A stretch of DNA of 64,000 nt from positions 124,001 to 188,000 of the IMG/VR virus record IMGVR_UViG_3300032322_001765. One strand, 5' to 3'. Below the pieces are notes generated by a model, which was not told the origin of the DNA, did not search any database, and saw nothing but the letters and a program-made list of their open reading frames with translations. Below, in pieces: positions 3,001 through 64,000 of the stretch (position 1 is its first letter; each line of letters begins with the position of its first letter). Made by a program: the position numbers and the translations under genes.

Positions 3001-6000
3001 ACTTAGGGACTCAAGGTTCAACTCTCACCGCTGATTTAGATGGGTATTTGTCTAATGTGAGAATAGTTAAAGGAGTTGCGGTATACACAAGTAGTTTTGT
3101 TGTGCCAACAAGTCCGTTGACCGCTATATCTGGTACTAGTTTGTTGACATGTCGTGATATAGGTTCAACAACAATATTCAATAAGTTTTCAGCAGGAGCA
3201 GCACACACTTTAATTAGAAATAGTGCTAGTACACAGGTATCTGCATTTGGGCTTACTACATCTGGACAACTTGGTTTAGGTGATACAATTAATAGATCAA
3301 GTCCTGTTATAGTAGGTAGTGGTACTCAAATCAATACTTACACAAATAGTCCTGTTCTAGTAACACCAGGTACTAGTGGATATACACAAGTATTTGCTGG
3401 ACAAAGCTTTAGTGTTGTAAAAAGAACTGACGAAGTTTATGTGTGGGGACTCAATAGTTCAGGTCAATTAGGTGACAATTCAATTATTAACAAATCAAGT
3501 CCTACGTTACTAAGTGCTGGCACAAACTTACAAATTGTGGATCAAAGTAATAGTGGCTTCTCAATTTTACGAAATGGTACTGGATACTCTACTACAGTAG
3601 TACCATTTGCAGGCGCGATATCTGGTTATTTTGGTGGTTCTCCTAACGGATTGCAGGTTGTAAACGCAAATCAATTAGATTTTGGAGTAGGTGATTTTTG
3701 TATGGAATGTTGGATATATCCAACATTATCATATTATCCTCTATCTGGTGTCTTCATGTCACATGGACAGTATAATGGATCAGGCTACTATATAGGTATG
3801 TCATGCTATCAAGGAAACATTAGAGTAGCTATAAGTAATCCCAATACAACACTTACTACTACTGTAGGTGTGACTCCGTTTACCGCTAATACGTGGTATC
3901 ATGTTGCAGTTATTAGAAACCAGTCTACTGTATTACCCTCAACAATGAATATGTATGTTAACGGTACAATTATTGGTTCTATAACCAATACAAATAATTA
4001 TGATTCAGTAGCAAATGAAGGAATAGGTTCTGCTTTTGCAGGAAGTGGGGCAAGGTCACCATACTATTATTTTACTGGATACATTAGCAATGTTCGTATT
4101 GTCAAAGGAAATTATGTTTATGGTGGTAATGGTGCCGTTGGTAATTTCACGCCTCCAACAAGCCCATTAGCAAAAACACAATCAGCAGGTACAAATATAA
4201 ATGCTATAACAGGTAACGAAACTTCCTTATTGATTTACAACACACCTAGTTCGGTAACAGAAGTAAGTGAAGGTTTCAATTTAATTAGTGCTGGTTATAC
4301 ACATGTTACTTCTGTATCAAGCAATAATAAATTATATGCATGGGGATTAAACTCTAGTGGACAATTTGGTACTGGTAATGCAGTAACGTATAGTTCTCCT
4401 GTGCTTGTCGGTAATAGTCAAATAATTAATACTGGTACATTAAGTCCGGTGCAAGTGAATTTTGGATTGCCGAATAGTTGGGCTAGTGTTGCAGCAGGAC
4501 AATCATTTAGTATGGTTCGTGCATTTGATGGTAGTGTTTATGTTTGGGGATTAAATTCCTCAGGACAATTAGGACAAAGTGATTCGATTAATAGATCGAA
4601 ACCAACGTTGGTTGGTGGTCAATTAAATGCTGTATTGGATGTTAGTTCAGCAGCAAATACAATTACTAAATATGGAACCACATATACTACAACAACTGTA
4701 CCAACTGCAGGAAGTGTTGCCGGATATTTTAATGGTGTTAGTGATTATCTAAGATGTGATGCTGCTTTATCTGGTCTGACAACTACTACTGCTCAATTTA
4801 CAATTGAAGGATACGGTAATCCATCAACTTACAGTGGTTTTGCAAACGGTAGATTTATGATTGGCATCAACTCAAAAAGTTCAGGAACTAATAATTTATT
4901 AATAGGCGTAGATAGAATCTATTATAATGGAACAGAAATATCAAGTCTTAGTTTGCCATTAAACACTTGGACACATTTTGCGGCTACTTTTGATGGGACG
5001 ACATTCAGATACTTTATAGGAGGTGTTGAATCGTATTCAGAAGTTGCTGCACCTCAAACAGCATTTAGTAATAATGTATTTTTAATAGGAACAGAGGCTG
5101 ATGCTGCCGACGGAGGAACGTTAGGTAATTATTTACAAGGATATTTGTCAAATATTAGAGTAACACCTCAAGCGTTGTATACAGGTACATTTACGCCTCC
5201 TACTGGTATTTTGACAACATCAAGCGTAGGGACTTCAGGTCCAAATGTTGCTGCAAGTTTATCAGGAACAGTTTCGTTCTTAACATATACGACAGCTGCC
5301 GCTACAATCGATGGGGCACAACCGTTTTATCAATCGTCTATAGCTGCAGGCGCAACTCATTCAACAACTGTAAATGATTTTAATATTCTTTATGCATGGG
5401 GAGCAGGAGGGTCTGGTCAACTTGGAACAAATGCGATTAATAATTTATCAAGTCCGGTAGTGGTTGGTGGACAAACGAATGCTGATTTTAGAAGTCCAAT
5501 ATTAGCGGCATCAGGTAGTTGGTCAAGTGCAAGTGCAGGTGCTAGCCATAGTTTAGCAATAAAGGTCGATAATACATTGTATGGTTGGGGACTTAATAAC
5601 GCGGGTCAACTTGGATTGAATAATACAATTGATAGATCAAGTGTTACACAAATTGATACAACAGATGCTTATGCTTCTGTGAGTGCGGGTAGCAGTACAT
5701 CAATGGTAATTAAGTTAAATAATTTGCTTTATGCAACAGGTTTGGGTACTTCAGGGGTATTGGGTACAAATACTGCAATTAATAGAAGTAGTTTTGTTCA
5801 AGTTGGGTCAAATAGTTGGACTTTAGTATCAACTGGACTTACGACTTCAATGGGTATTGATTCAAATAACCTCTTGTATAGTTGGGGAGCAACAACACTA
5901 GGTCAGTTAGGCTTAAGCACAACTACTCCTGCTAGAAGTAACCCAACATTAGTACAAGGTATTAATCATCAAACAAAATCACCAACTTTAGTTGCAGGAA

Positions 6001-7964: not shown

Positions 7965-9680
7965 ATGCATCCAATTGATCAACTATTGGCATATCAATTA
8001 GAAGGAAAACAAAAAGAAGCTTGGGAAATCTCTGAGAGAATGGAAAGTGAAGGCCCAGAAAATTGCAAAGATCCAACAGGTAAAGTAAATCCAGAAACAT
8101 GGATACGTCACAGTTTTAATCGTGGTTGGTTTTTATTACAACAAGGCGATTATCAAAAAGGTTGTCAACAATTAGAAAATGGAAGATTCATCAGTGTATA
8201 TGGAAGTGGTCCACTAAAAACTGATGCACCTATTTATAATCCACAAGAACATGACATTGTAGGCAAATCAATAATAATTTCATTAGAGGGTGGTTATGGT
8301 GACGAGATTATTCATGCACGTTTCGCAACAAGTTTCAAAAATAAAGGTGCTAGTAAAGTATATCTAGCAGCCGCGCCCGAATTAGTAAGTGTTTTTAAAA
8401 GAATTGAAGGTGTTGATGACGTTATATTACGCAATCAGGCACACACGGTTCAACACGATTATTGGGTTCCTGGCTTTAGTGCGGGTTGGGTAGTCGGACA
8501 TACTTTTGATGATTTTCCGGGTAAACCTTACATGAGCCCACTTCCTGCAAGTGTCGATATATGGAAAAATTTAATTAACAGTGAAAAAATAAAAGTTGGT
8601 ATACGTTGGGCAGGTAATCCTAAATTTGAACATCAGCAGTTTAGAAAGTTTCCCGAAGCTTTCATGACCAACCTTGCAAAATATAAAGAACTTCAAATTT
8701 ACAGTTTACAACGTGATCATAATATTATTCAATTACCAGAAGGTGTAACTGATTTACAACACTTCTTACTAAGTTGGGAAGATACGATGGCATGTATTGC
8801 TAACTTAGACATCGTTATTACTAGTTGTACAAGTATCGCACATATAGCCGCAGCTATGGGCAAAGAAACATGGGTGACACCTCCGATTCTACCATATCAT
8901 ACTTGGGCGTATGGAAGTCCTGAAAACACAACTAGTCCTTATTACGAATGTGTTAAGTTATTTAGACAAGAAGAATCAGGAAAATGGAATACAACATTTC
9001 AAAAATTATACAGTGCATTAGAAGAAAAATTCAATTTAGAACATGTAGAAATGCCAAATGAGGATAAAGTATTAAAACGTTTGAATTTAGGTTGCGGTAT
9101 TAATAAATTTGACGGGTATCTAAATGTTGATAACAGTGAATTAGTTAAGCCAGATCAAATAGTTGATTTAAATGTTACTCCTTGGCCATGGAAAGATAAT
9201 GAGTTTGGTCATATAGTAGCCAAAGATGTACTAGAACATTTAGGAGATACACCTAAAGACTTTATGAACATCTTAAAAGAGATGTATCGTATCAGTGATA
9301 ACGGAGCGGTATGGGAAGTACAAGTACCACATTGGCGCTGTGATATAGCAGTTGATGATCCTACACATAGACGAGTGATAACGTTAGGTACTTTTATGCT
9401 ATTAAATCAAAAGAAAAACTTTGAACGTATGAAAGAAAATCAAAGTGATTCATTATTAGCATTTGAACATGATATTGATTTAGAAGTATGTGATGTTAAT
9501 TTTGAATATTTACCACATTGGAGTGAAAGATTAAAAAGAGGTGAAATTTCTGAAGAAGAATTAAATTATGCTTTGAACACATTTAATAATGTTGCTTTAA
9601 GTATGAGATTACTAATTCAAGTAAATAAACCGGGTCGGGTGTCAATAGGCGAAATAGAATCTTTTATAGCCAATAAATAA
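7965..9680 (+). CDS. GT9-like glycosyltransferase fused to a class I SAM methyltransferase
   Basis: EGGYGDEIIHARF, VGIRWAGNP and LDIVITSCTSIAHIAAAMGK motifs of TPR/GT9-like proteins; C-terminal LNLGCG...DVLEHL. Confidence 0.7.
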   Translation: MHPIDQLLAYQLEGKQKEAWEISERMESEGPENCKDPTGKVNPETWIRHSFNRGWFLLQQGDYQKGCQQLENGRFISVYGSGPLKTDAPIYNPQEHDIVGKSIIISLEGGYGDEIIHARFATSFKNKGASKVYLAAAPELVSVFKRIEGVDDVILRNQAHTVQHDYWVPGFSAGWVVGHTFDDFPGKPYMSPLPASVDIWKNLINSEKIKVGIRWAGNPKFEHQQFRKFPEAFMTNLAKYKELQIYSLQRDHNIIQLPEGVTDLQHFLLSWEDTMACIANLDIVITSCTSIAHIAAAMGKETWVTPPILPYHTWAYGSPENTTSPYYECVKLFRQEESGKWNTTFQKLYSALEEKFNLEHVEMPNEDKVLKRLNLGCGINKFDGYLNVDNSELVKPDQIVDLNVTPWPWKDNEFGHIVAKDVLEHLGDTPKDFMNILKEMYRISDNGAVWEVQVPHWRCDIAVDDPTHRRVITLGTFMLLNQKKNFERMKENQSDSLLAFEHDIDLEVCDVNFEYLPHWSERLKRGEISEEELNYALNTFNNVALSMRLLIQVNKPGRVSIGEIESFIANK

Positions 9681-54659: not shown

Positions 54660-56232
54660 ACTGTTCTTTGAGCCAGTCGTAGTCATTTATCCTTTTTAAT
54701 ACTTCTGTATCATTCTTGTTAGCCATCGCAAATTCTTTGCCTGCAATAGCTCCGTCAATTGCAAATTCGCCGTACTTCTTATCTTTGCCTACTGTACACC
54801 AAACGTTTAATCTGTCGTTAGTTTCAATTGAGTTTTGTCTATCAATTATTTGACTTGCTAACTTTACGCATTCTCTAAATGCACTTCGCCATGTATTGAA
54901 TGGATCCGTATTAAAATTAGTATAATTACTTAGTTTAATTACAGGTTCGTATAAATTACTTATACTTGTAGTCATATCAGGTTTATTAGTTTGCATATGT
55001 AACGTGTAGAATCTGGGTAATAGCTTTACACCACCGTACCCATATATTAACCCATTAATTGGATTAACGCTGCGCCAAACTCTAACTTTGGCTTGTTCAT
55101 AAAAAGGTACACTAAAATCAAAAGAAAAATCATCAACTAATGATGCATCGGCATCTACTACCCAAAAATAATCTGTTTTTGCAATCTTAGCAGCAGCAAT
55201 GTGTGCTTGATGTATCCCTGCTATGCCGTCAATTCTTTTTGCTTTTGGATATTTTTTAAGTACTAGTTCAAAATTTTTTTCAGCGTTTGGTTCACCGTAG
55301 CTTATGAATATTACGTCAAATTCACCTGGGTATTTGTATTTTATAAATGTTTCAGGACTTCTTCTGCTTACAGGAATTTCTTCTTTGTATTCTTTGCTAG
55401 CATTTGGTTGAAATACATCTACAATTCTTCCATCATTTGTTATAGAACTTAACGATCTACCTAATCGATTACATTCAAACAATATATCATCTTTATATAA
55501 TTCATACTGAGCTTCAAATAGGTTATCTAAATGTTCAAAATCTTTGATATCCCCTATATTAAAATTTTGTTTTGACAATGCGATATATGCTGCCTGCCTG
55601 GCGCCCAATATAGCCCAAACTCCATTTTCAACGTCTGTGCCTAAATGCATCCATCTCCAAAGTCTTTCATAATTTCTCCAGTTGATTTCTGAAATTTCTT
55701 TTACGAATATATCATTTTCCATACATAGTTTGATGCCTTCCCTAAACCCACTTCTCCAAGCTTGCTTTGGACTTGAATTTATGTTTACATCACTTAAACT
55801 ACGATTTAATTGTAGATAATTTTTAAAATCAAAATCAACACTATTAGGATTGGAGCTGTTTTCATGGGTACGCATAGTTTTCAGTTTTTCTACTGGCCAA
55901 ACTTTGATACCACCGTTACCATACGTATTTCCATTAATGTTGTTTTTACCACTAAAGCTTATTACACTGTCGGATACGTTTACGGTATCGACTAGATTCA
56001 GTTCAATTTGCAATAAATTATCGTGTACGTAGTTATCACCATCAACAATAATAACGTGACTATGATTTTCAACAAGATTTGCAACAGCTTTGTGTGCAGT
56101 GTCGCTTCCCTTTATATTGTCAACACGCAGTGCATTTGGACAAATTTCTAGTAAGCGTAAGTAATTGGCTTCTTTGTTTTCCTCTTGATAACTTAGAAAA
56201 ACGACTGGATAATTTTGAATTTTGAATAGCAT
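54631..56232 (-). CDS. Internally duplicated GT-A-like protein
   Basis: Two copies of V(V/I)F(L/I)SY.E.N...G...AH...VD(G/A)D...N..NG..YG.GG(I/V)K...WRS.FRE..KL. Confidence 0.6.
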   Translation of the reverse strand: MLFKIQNYPVVFLSYQEENKEANYLRLLEICPNALRVDNIKGSDTAHKAVANLVENHSHVIIVDGDNYVHDNLLQIELNLVDTVNVSDSVISFSGKNNINGNTYGNGGIKVWPVEKLKTMRTHENSSNPNSVDFDFKNYLQLNRSLSDVNINSSPKQAWRSGFREGIKLCMENDIFVKEISEINWRNYERLWRWMHLGTDVENGVWAILGARQAAYIALSKQNFNIGDIKDFEHLDNLFEAQYELYKDDILFECNRLGRSLSSITNDGRIVDVFQPNASKEYKEEIPVSRRSPETFIKYKYPGEFDVIFISYGEPNAEKNFELVLKKYPKAKRIDGIAGIHQAHIAAAKIAKTDYFWVVDADASLVDDFSFDFSVPFYEQAKVRVWRSVNPINGLIYGYGGVKLLPRFYTLHMQTNKPDMTTSISNLYEPVIKLSNYTNFNTDPFNTWRSAFRECVKLASQIIDRQNSIETNDRLNVWCTVGKDKKYGEFAIDGAIAGKEFAMANKNDTEVLKRINDYDWLKEQYDRFYKNSI

Positions 56233-56268
56233 GACAATATTTATTAGAAAAAACGGGCAAATAAGTAT

Positions 56269-56297
56269 TTGACTATATAGATATCTTATTGTACAAT
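56269..56297 (+). promoter_or_regulatory. sigma70-type promoter upstream of the leader ORF and tRNA array
   Basis: TTGACT-17 nt-TACAAT. Confidence 0.65.
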
Positions 56298-56369
56298 GTG
56301 TACATTGAAAATGCGTAAAAAAGCTAGATAATTTAAGCTTTTATTATGCCAGGACTAAATAACTTTACT

Positions 56370-56510
56370 ATGATGAACTTTACTTGTAAAAATACGATGC
56401 TGCATGAAGGGCTATGGTCAGTTTTAGCCATAGAGTCTTTTGCGCCTGTATATCCAACAAGTATCCGTGGCACAAATGATAATCAAAGCGGCTACCGGGG
56501 AACGGAATAA
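56370..56510 (+). CDS. Putative leader peptide, 46 aa (MMNFTCKNTMLHEGLWSVLAIESFAPVYPTSIRGTNDNQSGYRGTE)
   Basis: Not in ORF track; TAAATA at 56356-56361; alternative in-frame ATG at 56346; terminator follows. Confidence 0.5.
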   Translation: MMNFTCKNTMLHEGLWSVLAIESFAPVYPTSIRGTNDNQSGYRGTE

Positions 56511-56537
56511 ACAAGTAACATTATAAAAGTTTATACG

Positions 56538-56570
56538 AACCCTGGAAATTTAAAATCTCCAGGGTTTTTT
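56538..56570 (+). terminator. Intrinsic terminator (candidate attenuator)
   Basis: AACCCTGGA...TCCAGGGTT stem followed by a T-run. Confidence 0.8.
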
Positions 56571-56589
56571 GTTGCAGGAATACAACACT

Positions 56590-56748
56590 ATGATTGACAA
56601 AATAACAGAAAATGATATAAAATTCGGTTCGCTTGATAACAAAAAGTGGTATGAAGAACATGTGTTATCAAAAGAACAACTAGATTTGTTAATAAAAAAC
56701 AAATTTGATAGGTATAAAAATTATCAAATAGACAAGGTTGATTGCTAA
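56590..56748 (+). CDS. Small hypothetical protein, 52 aa (MIDKITENDIKFGSLDNKKWYEEH...)
   Basis: AGGA upstream, open frame to TAA at 56748; not in ORF track. Confidence 0.4.
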   Translation: MIDKITENDIKFGSLDNKKWYEEHVLSKEQLDLLIKNKFDRYKNYQIDKVDC

Positions 56749-56901
56749 TTTTTATACAAGTGTTTAGAGAGAACGAGGCTCTTAGGTTCACTATAAAAAA
56801 TCTTTAACGGGCGGACAGTATACATGAAGTATATGGCGAAAACATATATAGTAAGACTACTGGTTGGAACGTCGATTCTAACATAATGCGAGATAACTCG
56901 C

Positions 56902-57014: not shown

Positions 57015-57090
57015 TGGGGATTCGCCAAGTTGGTAAGGCACCGGATTTTGATTCCGGCATTCGGTGGTTCGAGTCCATCATCCCCAGCCA
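57015..57090 (+). tRNA. tRNA-Gln(TTG)
   Basis: Cloverleaf; CCGGA-TTTTGAT-TCCGG; CCA. Confidence 0.95.
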
Positions 57091-57092
57091 TT

Positions 57093-57169
57093 GCCCCAAT
57101 AACTCAGTGGACTAGAGTACTGTGCTACGAACGCAGGAGTCGGAGGTTCGAATCCTTCTTGGGGTACCA
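57093..57169 (+). tRNA. tRNA-Arg(ACG)
   Basis: CTGTG-CTACGAA-CGCAG; CCA. Confidence 0.95.
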
Positions 57170-57229
57170 TTCTTGTTGACTAAATACGTTTGCTTGTTTA
57201 ATATGAGCGTTCTTATACAGGAGGTAAAC

Positions 57230-57301
57230 ATGTGGACTAAACCTACAGCACAGGATATGCGTTTTGGTTTTGAAATCACTATGTATATTGCAAATCGCTA
57301 A
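57230..57301 (+). CDS. pqqA: PQQ precursor peptide PqqA (MWTKPTAQDMRFGFEITMYIANR)
   Basis: 23 aa; W.KP...D.RFGFE.TMY..NR with the ExxxY motif; AGGAGG RBS; hairpin after the stop. Confidence 0.93.
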   Translation: MWTKPTAQDMRFGFEITMYIANR

Positions 57302-57319
57302 TATACAACATTGATGGGC

Positions 57320-57346
57320 AAAAAGGTAGCTATGCTACCTTTTTTT
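57320..57346 (+). terminator. Intrinsic terminator after pqqA (possibly bidirectional)
   Basis: AAAAAGGTAGC-TAT-GCTACCTTTTTTT. Confidence 0.85.
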
Positions 57347-57348
57347 AC

Positions 57349-57424
57349 GGTAGAGTAGCATAGCGGCTAATGCGCCACCTTCATACGGTGTTTATCGTCA
57401 GTTCGAGTCTGACCTCTACTACCA
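57349..57424 (+). tRNA. tRNA with CAT anticodon (elongator Met or Ile2)
   Basis: CACC-TTCATAC-GGTG; paired 1:72; CCA. Confidence 0.85.
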
Positions 57425-57438
57425 ATAAAGGAAATATT

Positions 57439-57591
57439 ATGCCAATGTATGAAACTACTGTTAGAACGCCGAGCGGCGAAGAAAAGAAAAGAATTTATGC
57501 GGATACACCGCAAGAGGCTAAAAAACTTTTTGAACAATTGTATGGTGGGCCTAGAGCAGTTCCATATATACCAAAAATAGTACCAAGTTAG
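57439..57591 (+). CDS. Small hypothetical protein, 50 aa (MPMYETTVRTPSG...)
   Basis: AAGGA RBS; true start lies after the tRNA. Confidence 0.65.
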   Translation: MPMYETTVRTPSGEEKKRIYADTPQEAKKLFEQLYGGPRAVPYIPKIVPS

Positions 57592-57664
57592 GGGGATTAG
57601 TTAAATGGGATAACAACGGCTTTGCAAGCCGTGATTAACAGTTCGATTCTGTTATCCTCCACCA
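57591..57664 (+). tRNA. tRNA-Ala(TGC)
   Basis: G3:U70 pair; ACGGC-TTTGCAA-GCCGT; CCA. Confidence 0.95.
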
Positions 57665-57675
57665 AAACATTCAAT

Positions 57676-57752
57676 GGTGATGGTAGCTCAGTTGGTAGAG
57701 TCCCGGATTGTGATTCCGGTCGTCGTGGGTTCGAGCCCCATCCTTCACCCCA
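57676..57752 (+). tRNA. tRNA-His(GTG)
   Basis: G-1 and C73; CCGGA-TTGTGAT-TCCGG. Confidence 0.95.
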
Positions 57753-57755
57753 AAT

Positions 57756-57833
57756 ACCCTGATGGCGAAATTGGTAGACGCACCAGTTTAAGGTACTGGA
57801 TTGTTGAGAGTTCGAGTCTCTCTCAGGGCACCA
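57756..57833 (+). tRNA. tRNA-Leu(AAG), atypical
   Basis: Leu-type D-arm (GGCGAAATTGGTAGACGC); CCAGT-TTAAGGT-ACTGG; short variable region; A1-C72 mismatch. Confidence 0.75.
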
Positions 57834-57835
57834 AT

Positions 57836-57911
57836 GCCGTTCAAGCTAACCAAGTGGAAGCGTCTGTCTGAAGAACAGAATGGCCTGGAGCGTTACCAGG
57901 GGTCGGCACCA
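57836..57911 (+). tRNA. tRNA-Phe(GAA), atypical T-loop
   Basis: TCTGT-CTGAAGA-ACAGA; T-arm CCTGG-AGCGTTA-CCAGG; CCA. Confidence 0.8.
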
Positions 57912-57915
57912 ATTT

Positions 57916-57944
57916 TTGACAAATATTAAATTATTTGTTATACT
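57916..57944 (+). promoter_or_regulatory. sigma70-type promoter
   Basis: TTGACA-17 nt-TATACT. Confidence 0.75.
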
Positions 57945-57948
57945 TGAT

Positions 57949-58023
57949 GAGTCCTTAGTCTAATGGATAAGATACTGCATTCCGATTGCATTGATGCAGG
58001 TTCGATTCCTGCAGGACTTACCA
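57949..58023 (+). tRNA. tRNA-Arg(CCG)
   Basis: TGCA-TTCCGAT-TGCA; A20 in D-loop; CCA. Confidence 0.88.
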
Positions 58024-58055
58024 AAAGTAAATACTATTTTATATAGGAGATTAAA

Positions 58056-58616
58056 ATGTCTGTCTTAGCTTTGGATATCACAGGAATCCCTAGACAATGG
58101 GTTTCAAACGATATTGCAATCACTTACCATGCAAAAGAGATGGTAGCATGGAGTATTGGTGAAATTGTTGCACGTTATCGTGGTGGCATTCAAAATAATG
58201 GCAAAATGAGTTATCTTGAAACTCCTAGTATTATTGCCATTAAAGGACATGGTTTTGATCCTAGCAAACATGGCAAAGTTGCACTTACTAATAAAACATT
58301 GTTTGGGCGTGACCGTCATGTATGTGCATACTGCGGCGGACATTTTTCGAATTCAAACAACTTAAGTCGTGACCATATTTTACCTAAAAGCAGAGGTGGT
58401 GCAAACAATTGGATGAATGTGGTTACTGCATGTACTCCATGCAATAACAAGAAAGACAACAAAACATTGAAAGAGGCACGAATGGAATTGCTTTATGTTC
58501 CCTATGAGCCAAATTTCTTTGAAGCAATGATTTTGCAAAATAGAAATATTCTCGCTGATCAAATGGAATACTTAATGACAGGTGTACCAAAACATAGCAG
58601 AATTTTGTTATCATAA
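58056..58616 (+). CDS. HNH endonuclease (McrA-like)
   Basis: RDRHVCAYCG, SRDHILPKSRGG, WMNVVTACTPCNNKK; AGGAG RBS. Confidence 0.92.
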   Translation: MSVLALDITGIPRQWVSNDIAITYHAKEMVAWSIGEIVARYRGGIQNNGKMSYLETPSIIAIKGHGFDPSKHGKVALTNKTLFGRDRHVCAYCGGHFSNSNNLSRDHILPKSRGGANNWMNVVTACTPCNNKKDNKTLKEARMELLYVPYEPNFFEAMILQNRNILADQMEYLMTGVPKHSRILLS

Positions 58617-58624
58617 TAAAAACA

Positions 58625-58653
58625 TTGACATAAAATGTTTTGTGTGATATGAT
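58625..58653 (+). promoter_or_regulatory. sigma70-type promoter
   Basis: TTGACA-17 nt-TATGAT. Confidence 0.7.
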
Positions 58654-58672
58654 TGCGTTTAAATAGTTTTAT

Positions 58673-58747
58673 GCTGGCGTGGCTCAACGGTAGAGCAACG
58701 GATTTGTAATCCGTAGGTTGAGGGTTCGATTCCTTTCGCCAGCACCA
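58673..58747 (+). tRNA. tRNA-Thr(TGT)
   Basis: ACGGA-TTTGTAA-TCCGT; CCA. Confidence 0.95.
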
Positions 58748-58753
58748 TTTTAT

Positions 58754-58829
58754 TGTCTAGTAGCTCAGTCGGTAGAGCAGGTGACTGTTAATCACCCTGT
58801 CGTAGGTTCGATCCCTACCTAGACAGCCA
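58754..58829 (+). tRNA. tRNA-Asn(GTT)
   Basis: GGTGA-CTGTTAA-TCACC; G73; CCA. Confidence 0.95.
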
Positions 58830-58853
58830 AACTTCTTGTATTATAGGTATATT

Positions 58854-59048
58854 ATGTTAGTTACTGAAGCACAAGGTTACAAACTTTTCTGTGAAACACA
58901 AAAAATTGATTTCCCGCCGGACACCTATTATGTTCGTATTTTTACCAAATATGAATTTGCTAAGAACTCTGATGCGGAGCAAACTAAGATTGAACTTTTT
59001 CTAACTAAAAGTGAATTAGACAATCTTAGACAAATGCTTACTGTCTAA
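58854..59048 (+). CDS. Small hypothetical protein (MLVTEAQGYKLFC...)
   Basis: AGGT RBS, ATG at 58854; fills the inter-tRNA gap. Confidence 0.55.
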   Translation: MLVTEAQGYKLFCETQKIDFPPDTYYVRIFTKYEFAKNSDAEQTKIELFLTKSELDNLRQMLTV

Positions 59049-59055
59049 TTAATTT

Positions 59056-59130
59056 CTGGCGTTCGTATAAGGGATAATACTACAGACTTCTAATCTGTAA
59101 ATCCAGGTTCGAGTCCTGGACGCCGGACCA
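59056..59130 (+). tRNA. tRNA-Arg(TCT)
   Basis: ACAGA-CTTCTAA-TCTGT; CCA. Confidence 0.95.
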
Positions 59131-59159
59131 AATTATCAAACTAGCAACAAAAATAATTG

Positions 59160-59188
59160 TTGACGATAAATCCTATTTGATGTATAAT
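59160..59188 (+). promoter_or_regulatory. sigma70-type promoter
   Basis: TTGACG-17 nt-TATAAT. Confidence 0.75.
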
Positions 59189-59233
59189 TCTTTTTATCGT
59201 AGTTAATATCTTTAACAATTTAATAACATTTAG

Positions 59234-59309
59234 GCACCCATCGTCTAGAGGCCTAGGACATTGCCCTTTCAAGGCAGTAACACGGGTTCGAATCCCGTTG
59301 GGTGTACCA
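59234..59309 (+). tRNA. tRNA-Glu(TTC)
   Basis: TTGCC-CTTTCAA-GGCAG; CCA. Confidence 0.95.
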
Positions 59310-59369
59310 GTTAATGGTATAACTAACTGTGATACAAGCACAATATGCTTGGTAGATTATACCATACTT

Positions 59370-59446
59370 GCCCACTTAGCTCATTCGGTTAGAGCATCGT
59401 CTTGATAAGGCGGGGGTGCTTGGTTCGATTCCAAGAGTGGGCACCA
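59370..59446 (+). tRNA. tRNA-Ile(GAT)
   Basis: TCGTC-TTGATAA-GGCGG; CCA. Confidence 0.93.
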
Positions 59447-59527
59447 TATTGAAGCACATTATTAGTGACGCTGGGAAGGACAAGATTCAGCGGTAAATAA
59501 ATCCTTCATTAGTGTGTTTCAATATGG
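59444..59527 (+). ncRNA. Conserved-stem hairpin element, copy 2
   Basis: CCATATTGAAGCACATT / AGTGTGTTTCAATATGG, 17 bp with two G-U pairs; begins at the CCA of tRNA-Ile. Confidence 0.55.
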
Positions 59528-59556
59528 TTGACAATAAATCAGTTTGCTGTTAAACT
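59528..59556 (+). promoter_or_regulatory. sigma70-type promoter upstream of the putative ncRNA
   Basis: TTGACA-17 nt-TAAACT. Confidence 0.65.
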
Positions 59557-59569
59557 AGCGGCAAATAAA

Positions 59570-59763
59570 GATTCCGGTTACTACTTTCCTGAAAGTAGCG
59601 TGTGGCGACGATAATTGACCCGGTGGCAGCAAACCGTTAGCGAGGTAACTCCTCAGGCACTGCTAGGCAGAATCCCAACTGCACACAGACACGAGAATAA
59701 ACGGGATGGACAGGGTAACAACTCTGCTAAGGGGCGATGCCTGGAAAACACGTAGCCTTAGCA
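59570..59763 (+). ncRNA. Unrecognised structured ncRNA, copy A
   Basis: GC-rich, non-coding; shares GATGGACAGGGTAACAACTC and the flanking hairpin layout with 60644-60843. Confidence 0.6.
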
Positions 59764-59889
59764 ATATTAGTTTTGCAGTTTGTAAGCACAGAAGCCGGCG
59801 CGAGGCATTATGTAACCAAAGCAATAAACAGTAATCACGTGTAAAGCTGTTGAGCGAGGCATATAGTATAAACTGCAAAACTAATATTG
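59762..59889 (+). repeat. Perfect 20-bp inverted repeat enclosing an 88-nt insert
   Basis: CAATATTAGTTTTGCAGTTT (59762-59781) / AAACTGCAAAACTAATATTG (59870-59889). Confidence 0.85.
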
Positions 59890-59965
59890 GCTTCATAGTT
59901 CAGTTGGTTAGAACGCCGCCCTGTCACGGCGGAGGTCAGGGGTTCGAGTCCCCTTGAGGTCGCCA
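59889..59965 (+). tRNA. tRNA-Asp(GTC)
   Basis: CCGCC-CTGTCAC-GGCGG; G73; CCA. Confidence 0.95.
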
Positions 59966-60047
59966 AACATAGGGTAAACTTCTACTTGCACTTAATTTGA
60001 ACTTAAAGTAAAATATAGGTTCTTTAGTTAAGTCATTGGAGAACAGA

Positions 60048-60251
60048 ATGAATTTGAAATTGAAAGCAGCATTGTATACCTTTCTATATGCATTAACAGG
60101 ATTAGGTGTAGGATTTGTAGTATCACAACTGCCTACTTGGACAGTAGTAACACTTGTGTGTATTTTTGGAATTTGTCTAGCATATATTCTTATACATACA
60201 GGACTAAAATACGATGAAGCAGTAAAAGAAATAAGTAAGAAGTACGAATAA
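60048..60251 (+). CDS. Small two-TM membrane protein
   Basis: GGAG RBS, ATG at 60048; two hydrophobic stretches. Confidence 0.6.
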   Translation: MNLKLKAALYTFLYALTGLGVGFVVSQLPTWTVVTLVCIFGICLAYILIHTGLKYDEAVKEISKKYE

Positions 60252-60259
60252 TGTAGTTA

Positions 60260-60350
60260 GGAGCGTTGGCCGAGTGGTCGAAGGCAGTGGTTTGCTAAAC
60301 CATCGTACATCAAAAATGTACCATTAGTTCGAATCTAATACGCTCCGCCA
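60260..60350 (+). tRNA. tRNA-Ser(GCT)
   Basis: GTGGT-TTGCTAA-ACCAT; long variable arm; G73. Confidence 0.95.
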
Positions 60351-60377
60351 GTTTTCATATTTTATTTAGGAAAGAAA

Positions 60378-60557
60378 ATGAAATATCTTAATTTTGTATT
60401 ACCCGTTATAATCACACTACTTTCAATAATTGGAATTATTGCTAGTTATGGTGCAGGTAACGATTCTGCACTTAGTGCATATGTTGTAGCATTATCAGGT
60501 TGGATGGTAATCGCAACGGATGAAGTTATTAAATTTATTGATAGTCGAAGAAAATAA
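60378..60557 (+). CDS. Small two-TM membrane protein, 59 aa (MKYLNFVLPVIITLLSIIGIIASYG...)
   Basis: AGGA RBS; just under the ORF-track cutoff. Confidence 0.6.
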   Translation: MKYLNFVLPVIITLLSIIGIIASYGAGNDSALSAYVVALSGWMVIATDEVIKFIDSRRK

Positions 60558-60563
60558 ATTTAT

Positions 60564-60641
60564 GCAACGGTGGCAGAGAGGCCCAATGCAAGAGTCTGCA
60601 AAACTCTAAAGCCGTCAGTTCGAATCTGACCCGTTGCTCCA
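60564..60641 (+). tRNA. tRNA-Cys(GCA)
   Basis: AGAGT-CTGCAAA-ACTCT; U73; CCA. Confidence 0.95.
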
Positions 60642-60643
60642 AG

Positions 60644-60843
60644 TATCCCGCAGGCCCTTCTGCGCTATGAAAGGGGGTATATTGGCTTCACCATAACGCC
60701 AGGGCTCTTACGTTGATAGCCTCAAAGCCCGCTTGACATGGGTGATAGAAAAAACGTAGGTGGGTATCACACCTTGCCAGAAGTAAATGTGATGGACAGG
60801 GTAACAACTCAGTAAGGGGCTTATGGGAATAAGTAGCCTTACA
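60644..60843 (+). ncRNA. Unrecognised structured ncRNA, copy B
   Basis: GATGGACAGGGTAACAACTC at 60791-60810, followed by a GTAAGG...CCTTAC hairpin. Confidence 0.6.
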
Positions 60844-60867
60844 CTTTATACTATAGGAGATCCTGTT

Positions 60868-60906
60868 ATGGATAGTGACAAGAGTGACAAGATAATGCGG
60901 GCATAG
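60868..60906 (+). CDS. Putative 12-aa mini-ORF (MDSDKSDKIMRA) overlapping the 5' end of tRNA-Lys
   Basis: AGGAG at normal spacing before the ATG; stop codon falls inside the tRNA. Confidence 0.35.
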   Translation: MDSDKSDKIMRA

Positions 60907-60972
60907 CTCAGTCGGTAGAGCAGTAGACTTTTAATCTATTGGTCGTGGGTTCGAATCCCCCTGCCCGTACCA
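60897..60972 (+). tRNA. tRNA-Lys(TTT)
   Basis: GTAGA-CTTTTAA-TCTAT; CCA. Confidence 0.95.
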
Positions 60973-61050
60973 TATAAAAACACATTCGCTTATATTTTAA
61001 CGGCTTGCAAGGCACGGGCGTATAAGAGTATTGAGTGTGTTTCTATATGG
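60970..61050 (+). ncRNA. Conserved-stem hairpin element, copy 3
   Basis: CCATATAAAAACACATTC / GAGTGTGTTTCTATATGG; begins at the CCA of tRNA-Lys. Confidence 0.55.
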
Positions 61051-61056
61051 TTTATT

Positions 61057-61141
61057 GGGGATGCGGCTAAGTTAGAGAGTGGCGGCGGACTGTAAATCCG
61101 TTCTTTCGGGTGAGTAGGTGCGAATCCTTCCATCCCCACCA
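61057..61141 (+). tRNA. tRNA-Tyr(GTA), atypical D/T loops
   Basis: GCGGA-CTGTAAA-TCCGT; variable arm; T-loop TGCGAAT; CCA. Confidence 0.85.
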
Positions 61142-61147
61142 ATTAAT

Positions 61148-61221
61148 TCCGGTGTAGTATAATGGCAGTGCGACGGTCTCCAAAACCGTTAGTGGGAGTT
61201 CGATTCTCTCCACCGGAGCCA
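61148..61221 (+). tRNA. tRNA-Trp(CCA)
   Basis: ACGGT-CTCCAAA-ACCGT; G73. Confidence 0.95.
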
Positions 61222-61222
61222 G

Positions 61223-61444
61223 TTATTTAGTGAATCGTCTAATATGTGTAGATATAGGAGTATTATATTGTTCTGTACCGCGATCACCGCCTACTGTTAA
61301 ACGTAAGTTTACATCAACGGTTTTTGCGTAATAGTTTACATAATTGGCAATTTTACTACTTGTTGTTCTAATTAGACAAATACCGGCATTATTACAAACT
61401 ATGTAGGTAGTTATTCCGAATTCGTCTTTGTCTATGAATAGCAT
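61223..61444 (-). CDS. Small hypothetical protein antisense to the tRNA array (MLFIDKDEFG...)
   Basis: Fills the gap between tRNA-Trp and the next promoter; start uncertain (61444 or 61513). Confidence 0.45.
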   Translation of the reverse strand: MLFIDKDEFGITTYIVCNNAGICLIRTTSSKIANYVNYYAKTVDVNLRLTVGGDRGTEQYNTPISTHIRRFTK

Positions 61445-61524
61445 AACATATTTATTAATATTTGGGCAACTAATAGTTGCATTATTAATTTGTTTGATGT
61501 ATAATCTATACATAAGTTAGAAAT

Positions 61525-61601
61525 GCCTCTGTAGCTCAATCGGTCAGAGCAGCGGACTCATAATCCGTTGGTTAGGGGTTCGAGTCCCTTCGGAGGCACC
61601 A
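61525..61601 (+). tRNA. tRNA with CAT anticodon (Ile2 or elongator Met)
   Basis: GCGGA-CTCATAA-TCCGT; G1-C72; CCA. Confidence 0.9.
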
Positions 61602-61609
61602 GGTATTAT

Positions 61610-61683
61610 GCGGGATTAGTTTAATGGTAAAACGAAAGCCTTCCAAGCTCTAGTTATCAGTTCGATTCTGATATCCCGCTCCA
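61610..61683 (+). tRNA. tRNA-Gly(TCC)
   Basis: GCGGGAT/ATCCCGC acceptor; CTTCCAA loop; U73. Confidence 0.93.
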
Positions 61684-61692
61684 AGTTAGAAT

Positions 61693-61776
61693 GCCCGGGT
61701 GGTGAAATGGTAGACACAAAGGACTTAAAATCCTTCGCCGCAAGGCGTGCCGGTTCGAGTCCGGCTTCGGGTACCA
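61693..61776 (+). tRNA. tRNA-Leu(TAA)
   Basis: AAGGA-CTTAAAA-TCCTT; variable arm CGCC-GCAA-GGCG. Confidence 0.95.
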
Positions 61777-61784
61777 AGTAACAT

Positions 61785-61867
61785 GCGCATATGGCGAAAT
61801 TGGTAGACGCGCCAGATTTAGGTTCTGGTCTCAACGGGTGGGGGTTCGAGTCCCTCTATGCGCACCA
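61785..61867 (+). tRNA. tRNA-Leu(TAG)
   Basis: CCAGA-TTTAGGT-TCTGG; variable arm; CCA. Confidence 0.95.
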
Positions 61868-61900
61868 CTGTTCTCTTTTATAAAGATAAATAATTGTACT

Positions 61901-62074
61901 ATGGCACAATTAAAAATCTTCATTAACGACAAACTATACAAAACAGTACCATTAGATACTGAAAAATATGAGCCTTCTTGGTATTGGCCTCAAATTAAGG
62001 CTGATAAAGAAGCCGGTTTACTAAATTCTTTTAACATTGAAGAATCAATGAAAGTAGAATTTAGAAAAATATAA
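61901..62074 (+). CDS. Small hypothetical protein (MAQLKIFINDKLYK...)
   Basis: TAAATA at 61887-61892, ATG at 61901. Confidence 0.6.
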   Translation: MAQLKIFINDKLYKTVPLDTEKYEPSWYWPQIKADKEAGLLNSFNIEESMKVEFRKI

Positions 62075-62152
62075 ACCATAATAGTTTGTATACTTTCAAT
62101 ATTGCAATGATATGCTCACGCATATCAAAAAAGCAAGCCTATTTTTTTAGCT

Positions 62153-62160
62153 TATAAATA
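62153..62160 (+). promoter_or_regulatory. T4-like late promoter TATAAATA upstream of the initiator-like tRNA
   Basis: Exact motif 4 nt before the 5' extension stem. Confidence 0.6.
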
Positions 62161-62178
62161 AGTCGTAGGACATTAAGA

Positions 62179-62251
62179 CGCGGGTTAGGGAAGAGGTCAT
62201 CCCGTTAGGCTCATAACCTGAAGATCGTTGGTTCAAATCCAGCACCCGCAT
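62179..62251 (+). tRNA. Initiator-like tRNA-fMet(CAT), no encoded CCA
   Basis: C1-A72 mismatch, purine11:pyrimidine24, TTAGG-CTCATAA-CCTGA, TTCAAAT T-loop. Confidence 0.8.
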
Positions 62252-62269
62252 CTTAGTGTCTTACAATAA

Positions 62270-62348
62270 CCGGGTGTAGCTTAGTCTGGCTTAAAGCGCC
62301 TGCTTTGGGAGCAGGAGATCGTGAGTTCGAATCCCACTTCCCGGACCA
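62270..62348 (+). tRNA. tRNA-Pro(TGG)
   Basis: CCTGC-TTTGGGA-GCAGG; C1-G72, A73; CCA. Confidence 0.92.
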
Positions 62349-62367
62349 ATTCTTTTTAAGGTGATAT

Positions 62368-62505
62368 ATGGCTAAGCAAGTTGGAGTAAAAGAACGTAAG
62401 AAGGTAGTCAAATTAACTTGTCAGGGAGGAAGTAAACCCAAAACAAGTACTATGAATAAGGATTTAAAAAGAAGTTACAAGAAGTATAGAGGACAAGGTA
62501 AATAG
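62368..62505 (+). CDS. Small very basic protein, 45 aa, ending KRSYKKYRGQGK
   Basis: AAGGTG RBS; MAKQVGVKERKKVVKLTCQGGSKPKTSTMNKDLKRSYKKYRGQGK; not in ORF track. Confidence 0.7.
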   Translation: MAKQVGVKERKKVVKLTCQGGSKPKTSTMNKDLKRSYKKYRGQGK

Positions 62506-62579
62506 CATCGTTAGTTCAGCGGTAGAATCCCTGCCTTACAAGCAGGTTGTCGTTGGTTCGAATCCAGCACGATGCACCA
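62505..62579 (+). tRNA. tRNA-Val(TAC)
   Basis: CCTGC-CTTACAA-GCAGG; CCA. Confidence 0.95.
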
Positions 62580-62585
62580 AGTATT

Positions 62586-62660
62586 GCGGGTGTAATTCAG
62601 GGGTAGAATGTTTGCTTGCCAAGCAAAATGTCAGGAGTTCGAATCTCCTCACCCGCTCCA
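62586..62660 (+). tRNA. tRNA-Gly(GCC)
   Basis: TTTGC-TTGCCAA-GCAAA; U73; CCA. Confidence 0.95.
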
Positions 62661-62676
62661 ATTTTATATAATTTTT

Positions 62677-63917
62677 ATGGCACATCAACAACAATTTGAT
62701 TTTGTACAAAGAGTAAAGAATCGCTATCCAATAAATTTTTTTCAGAAAAAAGTTTTAGAAATTGGTAGCTTAAACATTAATGGCACAATAAGAGATTTTT
62801 TCAACTATTGTGATTATTTGGGAGTTGATGTAGGACAAGGTCCATGCGTCGATATAGTTTGTGAAGGTCAAAATGTAGATCATCCCGACAACACTTATGA
62901 CACAGTTGCAAGTTGTGAATGTTTTGAACACAACCCTCATTGGGTAGAAACTTTTCAAAATATGTATCGTATGACTAAGCCGGGTGGTTTAGTTTTTATG
63001 AGTTGTGCAACTACAGGTAGACCTGAACATGGTACAACACGTACTAGTCCTAGTGATAGTCCGTTAACAATTGGTATAGGTTGGGATTACTATAAAAATT
63101 TAACTGAACAAGATTTTAGAGATAACTTTAACATTGATGAAATGTTCAGTGAATATAAATTTGAAGTTGGTACATCACATCCTGATTTATATTTTTATGG
63201 TGTTAAAAAAACAAGTGATGTAATTGATTTTAGAAAATACTTTACTGAAAAGTATTACGACAGTAATTGGTTAAAAACTGCAAAAGAAACTTATGACAAT
63301 AACGATCCTTACCCGCATCTTGTCATAGATGATTTTTTACCAGTTGACGTAATGGAAAAAGTTTTAAATTCTTTCCCTCAACCCGGCGACTTAGATTGGT
63401 GGGAATTCAAGAATGATAACGAAATAAAATTAGGCAGTAGAAAAGAAATTCAATTACCGCAAGTAACAAGAAATGTATGTGCAGAATTAAATTCTGGCTA
63501 TGTGTTAGATTGGTTAGAGTATTTAACCAGTGTACCTGGGCTTATTGCTGATACAAGATTGTTTGGTGGTGGGTTGCATCAAATTGTGCGTGGTGGAAAA
63601 TTAAACATCCATGTAGATTTTAATATTGAACCACATACAAAATTACGTAGGCGACTTAATGTTCTAATCTATCTTAACAAAGATTGGAAAGAAGAATACG
63701 AAGGTTATTTAGAATTGTGGGACAAAACAAAAACACAATGTGTAAAAAAGATAGCGCCCGTTTTTAATCGTTGTGTAATTTTTAATACTAATGATACTTC
63801 ATGGCATGGGCATCCTACTCCATTAAATACGCCCGAACATATTACAAGAAAAAGTTTAGCCATGTATTATTACTCTGTCGATACAGAGAACGTAAAAGTT
63901 CATTCAACCATTTATTA

Positions 63918-63918
<1 letters not shown>
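62677..63918 (+). CDS. Class I methyltransferase fused to a 2OG-Fe(II) oxygenase
   Basis: True start MAHQQQ at 62677; VLEIGSLNING, ECFEH; PYPHLVIDDFL, GGLH, LNIHVDFN, RRLN..IYLN, SWHG..RKS. Confidence 0.88.

Positions 63919-64000
<82 letters not shown>

Follow-up and report, generated by a model that had tools for sequence, protein, structure and literature searches.

A previously undescribed structured RNA in phage tRNA arrays

Two stretches of about 200 nt in the 64,000-nt window analysed here (positions 124,001 to 188,000 of IMG/VR record IMGVR_UViG_3300032322_001765) are diverged paralogues of a large, undescribed family of pseudoknotted non-coding RNAs, which uncultured freshwater giant phages carry inside their tRNA gene arrays, usually in two copies per genome. 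The RNA is present in environmental RNA libraries, although what it does is unknown.

The two copies and their family

A covariance model built from relatives finds both copies on the + strand over model positions 1-203, copy A (the type A paralogue) at 59570-59764 with 38.9 bits (E 1e-8) and copy B (type B) at 60644-60844 with 177 bits (E 5e-47). The initial annotation had described two diverged copies of an unrecognised structured RNA, and this observation is confirmed, since its boundaries lie within 1 nt of those of the model and every sequence feature it listed is present where it had been placed. The 5' end is ATTCCG in copy A and ATCCCG in copy B, the hairpins CTACTTT/AAAGTAG and CCCTT/AAGGG are found in copies A and B respectively, and the terminal hairpin has an outer stem (C)TAAGG/CCTTA(G) around GGC...GTAGC. 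Moreover the shared 20-mer, GATGGACAGGGTAACAACTC, occurs exactly at 59705 and 60791 and nowhere else in the 220,867-nt genome record, even when 3 mismatches are allowed. Copy B does follow tRNA-Cys, as had been stated, but the separate promoter claimed for copy A is only plausible and has not been shown. A sigma-70-like candidate (TTGACA-17-TAAACT with a TG, 10 of 12 matches) lies at 59528-59556 (+), although the scan found no more promoter-like sites than in shuffled sequence. Nevertheless two relatives, loci L004 and L054, carry TTGACA-16-TACAAT at the equivalent place.

The family has at least 160 distinct full-length members of 183-240 nt (median 201) in IMG/VR phage contigs. The covariance model was not run over all of IMG/VR and the metagenomes. 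A match to a described Rfam family had been named in advance as the result that would remove the novelty, and none was obtained: among the 4,227 models of Rfam 15 no match overlaps either copy at gathering score or at E<=10, and none overlaps the elements of six other loci (L004, L028, L034, L047, L109 and L120) at E<=0.5. A blastn search of both copies against 50,697 GenBank phage records gave no real hit, even at E<=10, and a pattern scan of the representative genomes of 185,579 prokaryote species returned 4 hits, all of which are chance matches of the 17-nt module described below and of nothing else in the element. Full-text literature searches for a 15-mer and for related descriptions found no paper on this RNA, and the UG27 ncRNA arrays of a 2026 preprint are a different, reverse-transcriptase-linked element. 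The family is abundant and yet absent from Rfam and from every cultured phage record searched.

Covariation and the fold

Absence of covariation or of expression had likewise been set out beforehand as grounds for dropping the ncRNA claim, and both were found. On a raw MAFFT alignment 75% of cells are paired against 37-50% in slid controls, with a covariation score of 0.345 against at most 0.152. On the covariance-model alignment of 89 distinct sequences 78.8% are paired against about 40%, with 872 double-change cells against 125-270, and 0 of 500 shuffles reach the observed value. An alignment of type A members only is 85.6% paired against 37-43% in slid controls. R-scape was not applied. In contrast, the minimum free energies of the single sequences were no better than those of shuffles (z 0.18 and -0.39), which is uninformative because the fold is pseudoknotted. 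The interpretation given in the initial annotation, a novel phage ncRNA under selection for structure, is therefore supported, with one refinement. The middle region, which had been read as a variable domain on a constant scaffold, is not free or guide-like but homologous between the two copies, and it keeps the same hairpins and pseudoknots through compensatory changes. What stays constant in sequence is only the 3' module of about 50 nt, made of a 17-nt hairpin and the internal loop of the terminal hairpin. Guide-type RNAs (omega, re or tracr-like) are not matched either, as the variable part is base-paired and covaries, the neighbours are tRNAs and small ORFs with no conserved effector gene, and there is no HEARO or other guide-RNA Rfam hit. 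That the region is no RNA gene at all, but protein-coding, a DNA-level repeat or site, or a chance similarity, is extremely unlikely. Short ORFs of up to 46 aa do exist on the + strand, but the two copies share none, the compensatory changes preserve Watson-Crick and G.U pairs on one strand only, there are 160 distinct homologues and RNA-library contigs cover the elements.

The 5' leader of copy B (UCC of AUCCC, 60646-60648) pairs with the loop of the 3' hairpin at 60826-60828 (PK4), the equivalent in copy A being 59572-59575 with 59743-59746. These pairs were not part of the covariance model, yet 89% of cells are paired, with UA 44, CG 16 and AU 8 at the first pair, and on the raw MAFFT alignment 94% are paired. 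As covariation does not distinguish pairing within a molecule from pairing between identical molecules, and as PK4 uses a terminal loop and a free 5' end, which suits kissing-type contacts, the RNA might form head-to-tail homo-oligomers such as rings or cages near the phage tRNAs, like the dimers and cages reported for raiA, ROOL and GOLLD. This we consider unlikely, since at about 200 nt the RNA is far smaller than ROOL or GOLLD and has no similarity to their Rfam models, although its oligomeric state was not examined. Heteroduplexes of A and B received no support, the RNAduplex energies of cognate pairs (-79.8) equalling those of non-cognate pairs (-79.5), although full-length duplexes are not meaningful.

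The leader is followed by an H-type pseudoknot, PK1 (60649-60675 in copy B), in which S1 is 60649-60653 with 60660-60664 (CGCAG/CUGCG) and S2 is 60655-60659 with 60671-60675 (CCCUU/AAGGG). In copy A, S2 is 59581-59587 with 59592-59598, whereas S1 is reduced to 59576-59577 with 59588-59589. Both stems change compensatorily across relatives, for example CAGAG/CUCUG, CCUG/CAGG, CCUAC/GUAGG and CGACUGU/ACAGUCG. Hairpin Pa (60683-60686 with 60698-60701) has 86.5% of cells paired, with GC 45 against AU 31 at one pair, and is weak in copy A (59604-59607 with 59617-59620). Hairpin Pb (60703-60706 with 60718-60721; copy A 59621-59624 with 59633-59636) is 84% paired with a basal GG/CC that is at least 94% conserved, and encloses a loop that pairs downstream as PK2 (60709-60713 with 60754-60758, UACGU/ACGUA; copy A 59626-59629 with 59660-59663), hairpin Pc lying in between (60727-60730 with 60740-60743; copy A 59642-59645 with 59651-59654). 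The partners of PK2 change together, as in UACGAU/AUCGUA, UAGGAU/AUCCUA, GCUAUG/CAUAGC and CUAGG/CCUAG, with 62% of cells paired in the covariance-model alignment. The loop of hairpin Pd (60759-60762 with 60770-60773; copy A 59667-59670 with 59679-59682) pairs with the 6 nt just 5' of the 17-mer as PK3 (60766-60771 with 60788-60793, AUCACA/UGUGAU; copy A 59672-59676 with 59703-59707, AUCCC/GGGAU). In the type A alignment PK3 is 74% paired and all 5 pairs show changes on both sides, for example AUCUC/GAGAU and UCAUUAU/AUAAUGA.

The near-invariant 17-nt module GGACAGGGUAACAACUC (60794-60810; copy A 59708-59724) is a local hairpin in which every position is at least 97% conserved in 89 distinct sequences. 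About half of the family nevertheless carries 1-3 changes in it, so that it is less rigid than a first scan suggested, and the natural variants GGACAGAGUAACAGCUC, GGACAGAGUAACUGCUC and GGACGGAGUAACAGCCC create C4-G14, A5-U13 and G2-C16 pairs. The possibility that the 17-mer guides the RNA against an invariant host RNA was put aside, as the changes instead create internal base pairs. The register of this hairpin is not settled, the common variants favouring 1-17, 2-16, 4-14, 5-13 and 6-12 while the rare GGACGGAGUAACAGCCC also fits 5-16, 6-15 and 7-14. The 3'-terminal hairpin (60812-60842; copy A 59726-59762) has a covarying outer stem, an invariant internal loop (G bulge; G.U closing pair; R-G) and an inner stem whose G-rich loop takes part in PK4. 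The outer and inner-base helix is 98% paired with up to 5 pair types per position, and the G.U pair is present in 88 of 88 sequences, such invariant G.U pairs showing that the structure is read on the + strand. Only the Pb base pairs and the 3' module are at least 90% conserved.

Genomic context and RNA-library coverage

Of 160 members 152 have tRNA genes within 3 kb, and all 1,644 of these tRNA genes lie on the strand of the element. In 67 of 159 cases the element starts 0-3 nt after a tRNA end, 44 of 155 are followed by a tRNA within 15 nt, and 26 have both. Copy B starts after a 2-nt gap from tRNA-Cys, which ends at 60641, and is followed by tRNA-Lys. Two copies are found in the record of the window and in each of three CheckV-complete phage genomes of 355-365 kb, and the two paralogues can lie 165 kb apart in one genome. 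No protein gene is consistently adjacent, and no phylogenetic-profile search for protein families that co-occur with the RNA was made. An ORF of 190-196 aa ends 2 nt before the element in one subgroup, but it has no Pfam family, only faint PHROG hits and no homologue in the genome record of the window.

These positions could be explained by a new class of self-cleaving or tRNA-trailer-processing ribozyme, which would cut the transcript at its own 5' boundary and so free the 3' end of the upstream tRNA or mRNA, as HDV-like theta ribozymes are reported to do next to phage tRNAs. The conserved leader, with A at position 2 and then YCC, is held by a covarying pairing to the 3' loop, which together with the invariant 3' module would form the active site, and the fold complexity and invariant core are typical of ribozymes such as glmS. 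However, this reading is doubtful, as more than half of the members have no tRNA directly upstream, copy A may start at a promoter, the order of helices does not fit the HDV, twister, hatchet, pistol, hammerhead or glmS folds, none of whose Rfam models match, and no cleavage data are available.

In the window a long spacer hairpin with 23-nt arms (59762-59889, +) runs from the 3' end of copy A to the first base of tRNA-Asp, and a similar hairpin at 59443-59528 runs from the CCA of tRNA-Ile towards copy A. Both were found as inverted repeats, and reading them as processing stems is inference. Together with the tight placement between tRNAs they could indicate a purely cis-acting punctuation or insulator element, whose fold would only organise processing or protect the flanking tRNAs and whose excised piece would have no function of its own. 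This is improbable, since a 17-nt core and an internal loop kept at 97% or more across very diverged scaffolds is far more than punctuation needs, two maintained paralogues can lie far apart in one genome, and some copies stand behind promoters or ORFs rather than tRNAs. In addition, the RNA accumulates in RNA libraries while the spacers do not. Contigs from five freshwater metatranscriptome runs cover 59568-59724 and 60660-60832, as well as the tRNAs, but not the neighbouring ORFs. Depth reaches 348 over 60700-60899, whereas it is about 0 over the ORFs at 55300-56899 and 0-2.3 over the spacers and small ORFs at 60100-60499. The contigs come from relatives at 90% identity or more and not demonstrably from this phage, and as the runs are kept as assembled contigs no RNA ends were mapped.

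Possible role and comparison with known systems

The data show that both copies are genes for one family of compact, multiply pseudoknotted RNAs, encoded on the tRNA strand within the tRNA arrays of uncultured freshwater phages, typically as two diverged paralogues per genome, and present in environmental RNA libraries. From the anatomy we infer that the RNA is transcribed with the array, or perhaps in the case of copy A from its own promoter, and is released by the enzymes that mature the flanking tRNAs. RNase P cutting at the 5' end of the next tRNA would set its 3' end and 3'-trailer processing of the preceding tRNA would set its 5' end, although such processing is unproven. Four long-range pairings would lock the variable 5' part of about 140 nt into a scaffold and tie the leader to the loop of the 3' hairpin, which would fix the geometry of the 3' module, that is the 17-nt hairpin, with a GGUAA loop over an A/C-rich internal loop, and the G / G.U / R-G internal loop next to it. 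The least certain inference is that this module is the working surface and binds a partner conserved across the hosts or phages, most probably a component of the translation or tRNA-processing machinery, so that the RNA would act in trans during infection alongside the phage tRNAs. We give this reading, a stable trans-acting RNA cut out of the array transcript, a probability of about 0.5. No partner has been identified, and paralogues within one genome can carry different 17-mer variants, which is awkward for a single common partner. It is also possible, though less likely, that the family is a new natural ribozyme or RNA-only machine of giant freshwater phages, which would either cut the array transcript at its own 5' end to finish tRNA 3' ends or assemble through its leader-loop contact into a multimer acting on the phage's tRNAs or the host's translation apparatus, with the 17-nt hairpin and the neighbouring internal loop as the catalytic or docking core. 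Complex, pseudoknot-rich folds with an invariant core are rare, and in the past they have turned out to be ribozymes, riboswitches or parts of central machines.

Theta ribozymes are structured, pseudoknotted RNAs placed immediately 3' of phage tRNA genes, but they are about 60-100 nt long with the nested P1-P2-P3-P1'-P4-P2' topology. The order of strands derived here is different and no HDV-type Rfam model matches, but self-cleavage was not assayed, and on these observations membership is left undecided. tmRNA and RNase P RNA are also pseudoknot-rich RNAs tied to tRNA biology, and phages of this group do carry tmRNA, a permuted beta-type tmRNA being found in L109 and L120. However, ARAGORN reports only tRNAs in the window, no tmRNA family hit falls on the elements and no RNase P family matches them at E<=10, there is no tRNA-like end or tag ORF, and no P4, CR-I or CR-V motif was seen by eye.

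The T4 RNAs rnaC and rnaD (species 1 and 2) are two small stable RNAs of unknown function (139 and 119 nt), encoded on the tRNA strand directly after the last tRNA of the T4 tRNA cluster, 1 and 6 nt from their neighbours. Homology to them is rejected, as the covariance model run with filters off on NC_000866 69000-75000 gives a best score of 2.5 bits (E 1.1), and rnaC ends in a tRNA-like T-arm, which this family lacks. GOLLD and ROOL are likewise phage- or prophage-encoded, often next to tRNA islands, with elaborate pseudoknotted folds and no known protein partner or function; they form nanocages, and GOLLD was first seen partly in lake metagenomes (PMC12286853). They share with the present family its context, which is not evidence of homology, but they are 580-830+ nt long, and their helices and conserved motifs differ. 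The present RNA is small enough for chemical probing, cleavage assays and structure determination, so that the question of its role can be tested directly. It adds a third, much smaller class to the unexplained ornate RNAs that phages keep beside their tRNAs (GOLLD, ROOL and T4 rnaC/rnaD), and this recurrence points to a still unknown RNA-based function linked to phage tRNA sets.

Extent of the RNA family

The window is part of a 220,867-nt IMG/VR virus record, which was rated 61% complete by CheckV, and positions 57015-64000 form an array of 26 or more tRNA genes, all on the + strand. The two stretches of about 200 nt singled out in the initial annotation do share the features listed there, and the observation is real. 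These features include the exact 20-mer GATGGACAGGGTAACAACTC at 59705 and 60791, which occurs nowhere else in the record even when 3 mismatches are allowed. No ORF is shared by the two copies.

A search with the 20-mer, which had been proposed as a way of checking the observation, found it in 18 IMG/VR contigs, while the inner 15-mer was found in more than 115 contigs. About 85 of the latter continue with TC and the same terminal hairpin, whereas the rest are chance matches inside ORFs. A covariance model of the 3' domain (R1) separated these two groups cleanly, at 31-83 bits against less than 30 bits, and also found extra copies that lack the exact 15-mer. A full-length model of 203 positions (R2), built from 30 B-like sequences, gave full-length matches in 99 places. 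Copy B scored 177 bits at 60644-60844 and copy A scored 38.9 bits at 59570-59764 (E 1e-8), so that A and B are diverged paralogues of one family. Moreover, a scan for a variant core (GGACRGAGTAACWRCYC plus the hairpin start) returned at least 120 loci, and all 100 loci tested hold a full-length match. In all, 160 distinct full-length members were collected, with lengths of 183-240 nt and a median of 201.

Covarying structure and sequence conservation

Read from 5' to 3' in copy B coordinates, the RNA begins with the leader AUCCC, which is followed by an H-type pseudoknot (PK1) with stem S1 at 60649-60653/60660-60664 and stem S2 at 60655-60659/60671-60675. Next come the hairpin Pa, the hairpin Pb, whose loop pairs with a strand 40 nt downstream (PK2), the variable hairpin Pc, and the hairpin Pd, whose loop pairs with the 5-6 nt just before a 17-mer (PK3). 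The 17-nt module lies at 60794-60810 and the 3' hairpin at 60812-60842, and the G-rich loop of this hairpin pairs with the leader (PK4).

Covariation, the absence of which had been set out in advance as a reason to withdraw the non-coding RNA claim, was found in three alignments. In a raw MAFFT alignment, not fitted to any structure, 75.3% of cells are paired against 37-50% in slid controls, with a covariation score of 0.345 against at most 0.152, and 0 of 500 shuffles reach it. In the covariance model alignment of 89 distinct sequences 78.8% are paired against about 40% in slid controls, with 872 double-change cells against 125-270. In a type-A-only alignment of 28 sequences 85.6% are paired against 37-43%, and compensations are seen in S1, S2, Pa, Pb, Pc and PK3. 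PK4 and S1 were not part of the covariance model, so their counts are not biased by the alignment; they are 89% and 69% paired, respectively, and PK4 shows UA 44, CG 16 and AU 8 at one pair. Single-sequence MFE folding was uninformative, as expected for a pseudoknotted RNA. A G.U pair that is invariant in 88 of 88 sequences, together with many G.U/U.G alternatives, shows that the fold belongs to the + strand RNA, which is the strand of the tRNAs.

Covariation cannot tell pairing in cis from pairing between identical molecules, and a homo-oligomeric RNA assembly with PK4 formed in trans is therefore possible, although it is considered unlikely as there is no direct evidence for it. The B loop tracks the leader of B itself, so the partner is not the other paralogue, and a test for A:B heteroduplex co-variation was also negative.

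Only the basal GG/CC of Pb, the 17-mer, the G / G.U / R-G internal loop of the 3' hairpin and one A after it are at least 90% conserved. The other ~140 nt keep their pairing but not their sequence. The 17-mer is less rigid than the first scan implied, since among distinct sequences the form GGACAGGGUAACAACUC was found in 82, GGACAGAGUAACAGCUC in 41, GGACAGAGUAACUGCUC in 36 and GGACGGAGUAACAGCCC in 2. These changes turn C4.A14 into C4-G14, A5.A13 into A5-U13 and G2.U16 into G2-C16. The module is therefore itself a hairpin (G1-C17, G2.U16, G6-C12, loop GGUAA) with an A/C-rich internal loop, in which position 7 changes together with position 14, although an alternative register (5-16, 6-15, 7-14) is not excluded. 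Because the variants build internal pairs, the 17-mer is unlikely to be a guide against an invariant target. Paralogues within one genome can carry different variants.

Genomic context and expression

Of the 160 distinct members, 152 have tRNA genes within 3 kb, and all 1644 such tRNAs are on the strand of the element. In 67 of 159 cases the element starts 0-3 nt after a tRNA end, in 44 of 155 it is followed by a tRNA within 15 nt, and in 26 both are true. Copy B starts 2 nt after tRNA-Cys. Copy A lies behind a promoter-like site at 59528-59556, which is not above chance by itself, although two relatives, L004 and L054, have a near-consensus extended -10 promoter at the same relative position. 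The start of elements flush with tRNA ends and ORF stops could point to a new ribozyme that cleaves itself at its 5' end. Nevertheless many members sit behind promoters or far from tRNAs, and this reading is held to be improbable. In one subgroup of relatives (L107 at 8880-9452 and L045 at 1384-1974; also L034, L074, L081, L089 and L115) a conserved ORF of 190-196 aa ends 2 nt before the element. This ORF has no Pfam family, only faint PHROG hits and no homologue in the genome record of the window. In the relative L090 (3552-3751) the 5' third of the element is replaced by the 3' end of this ORF.

The record of the window has two copies. So do three CheckV-complete genomes of 355-365 kb, in one of which the copies lie 165 kb apart. 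Each genome has one high-scoring B-like copy and one diverged, A-like copy.

Long inverted repeats with arms of 19-23 nt are present in the window at 59443-59528, 59762-59889 and about 60970-61050, starting at the CCA end of one RNA gene and ending at, or just before, the start of the next. The first of these (I3) bridges tRNA-Ile to the copy A region, and the second (I1) runs from the last bases of copy A to the first base of tRNA-Asp. They look like double-stranded processing stems (RNase III-type) inside the tRNA array, and a spurious Rfam mir-19 hit on both strands at 59759-59892 is the I1 hairpin. The motif GTGTTTCAATATGG, or a near variant, lies 0-5 nt upstream of many type-A and some type-B elements, as seen at 59514-59527 in the window, where it is the 3' arm of I3, and just 5' of the elements of the relatives L009, L014, L044, L061, L003, L001, L071 and L031. 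It is not enriched elsewhere in the window (13 hits with up to 3 mismatches against 11 expected), and it could be a processing stem or a phage promoter.

The array also contains an HNH endonuclease ORF at 58056-58616 (186 aa, PHROG E 3e-23), which recalls the homing endonuclease segB in the T4 tRNA cluster. Two small ORFs of 71 and 59 aa with hydrophobic, membrane-like sequences sit between tRNA genes at 60036-60251 and 60378-60557, and are not covered by metatranscriptome contigs. A 436-aa ORF at 62608-63918 combines a SAM-dependent methyltransferase domain with an endonuclease V-like domain; its called start at 62608 lies inside tRNA-Gly (62586-62660), so the true start is probably later. 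A giant ORF of 2633 aa or more (3-7904) runs off the start of the window. Most large ORFs tested have no PHROG family.

The DNA runs that hold the locus are freshwater and lake metagenomes. Expression, which had likewise been put forward as a point on which the non-coding RNA claim would stand or fall, is supported by contigs from five metatranscriptome runs, at 90% identity or more, that lie on the tRNAs and on the two elements, for example at 59574-59724, 59598-59724, 60682-60832 and 60660-60820. The mean word depth was 132 and 348 in two runs over 60700-60899 (copy B) and 11-98 over 59500-59699 (copy A), whereas it was about 0 over the ORFs at 55300-56899 and 0-2.3 over the small ORFs and spacers at 60100-60499. 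RNA ends were not mapped, as these runs consist of contigs, and the molecules come from close relatives rather than provably from this phage. Loose ends show other family variants in the same samples. Since the family has no cellular homologue, this coverage is phage RNA. A purely cis-acting punctuation role, which the tight fit between tRNAs might suggest, is unlikely because the core is too conserved and the element accumulates as RNA. That the element is not an RNA gene at all is very unlikely, as only short ORFs speak for it and both covariation and expression speak against it.

Interpretation and comparison with known RNAs

What the analysis establishes is a real, expressed and structurally constrained RNA gene family that is co-oriented with phage tRNAs and often butted against them. 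Beyond this it is inferred that flanking tRNA maturation excises the RNA, that the scaffold positions the invariant 3' module, and that this module engages a conserved partner in trans, a reading to which we assign a probability of about 0.5. The main inference of the initial annotation, that of an unrecognised structured phage RNA, is supported. However, it requires one correction, as the proposed variable domain is a conserved multi-pseudoknot scaffold and not a free variable segment.

An Rfam match, which had been named as the outcome that would remove the novelty, was not obtained, since no family matches even weakly. No tmRNA was found in either copy or in the window, although two relatives, L109 (2168-2532, - strand) and L120 (6993-7468, + strand), carry a permuted (two-piece) tmRNA of the betaproteobacterial type in the same tRNA region (Rfam, 126 and 84 bits), which hints at betaproteobacterial hosts. 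There was no similarity in 50,697 GenBank phage records, and the only four pattern hits in representative genomes of 185,579 prokaryote species are chance matches of the 17-mer alone. No paper in the literature searched contains the core sequence or describes such an RNA. By sequence and fold the RNA belongs to no described family.

The closest analogues by position are rnaC and rnaD of phage T4, two stable RNAs at the end of the T4 tRNA cluster, but these do not match the model. GOLLD and ROOL share the tRNA-island context and the unknown function (PMC12286853), although they are 3-4 times larger and unrelated by model. By context the RNA joins GOLLD, ROOL and T4 rnaC/rnaD as an unexplained structured RNA kept beside phage tRNAs.
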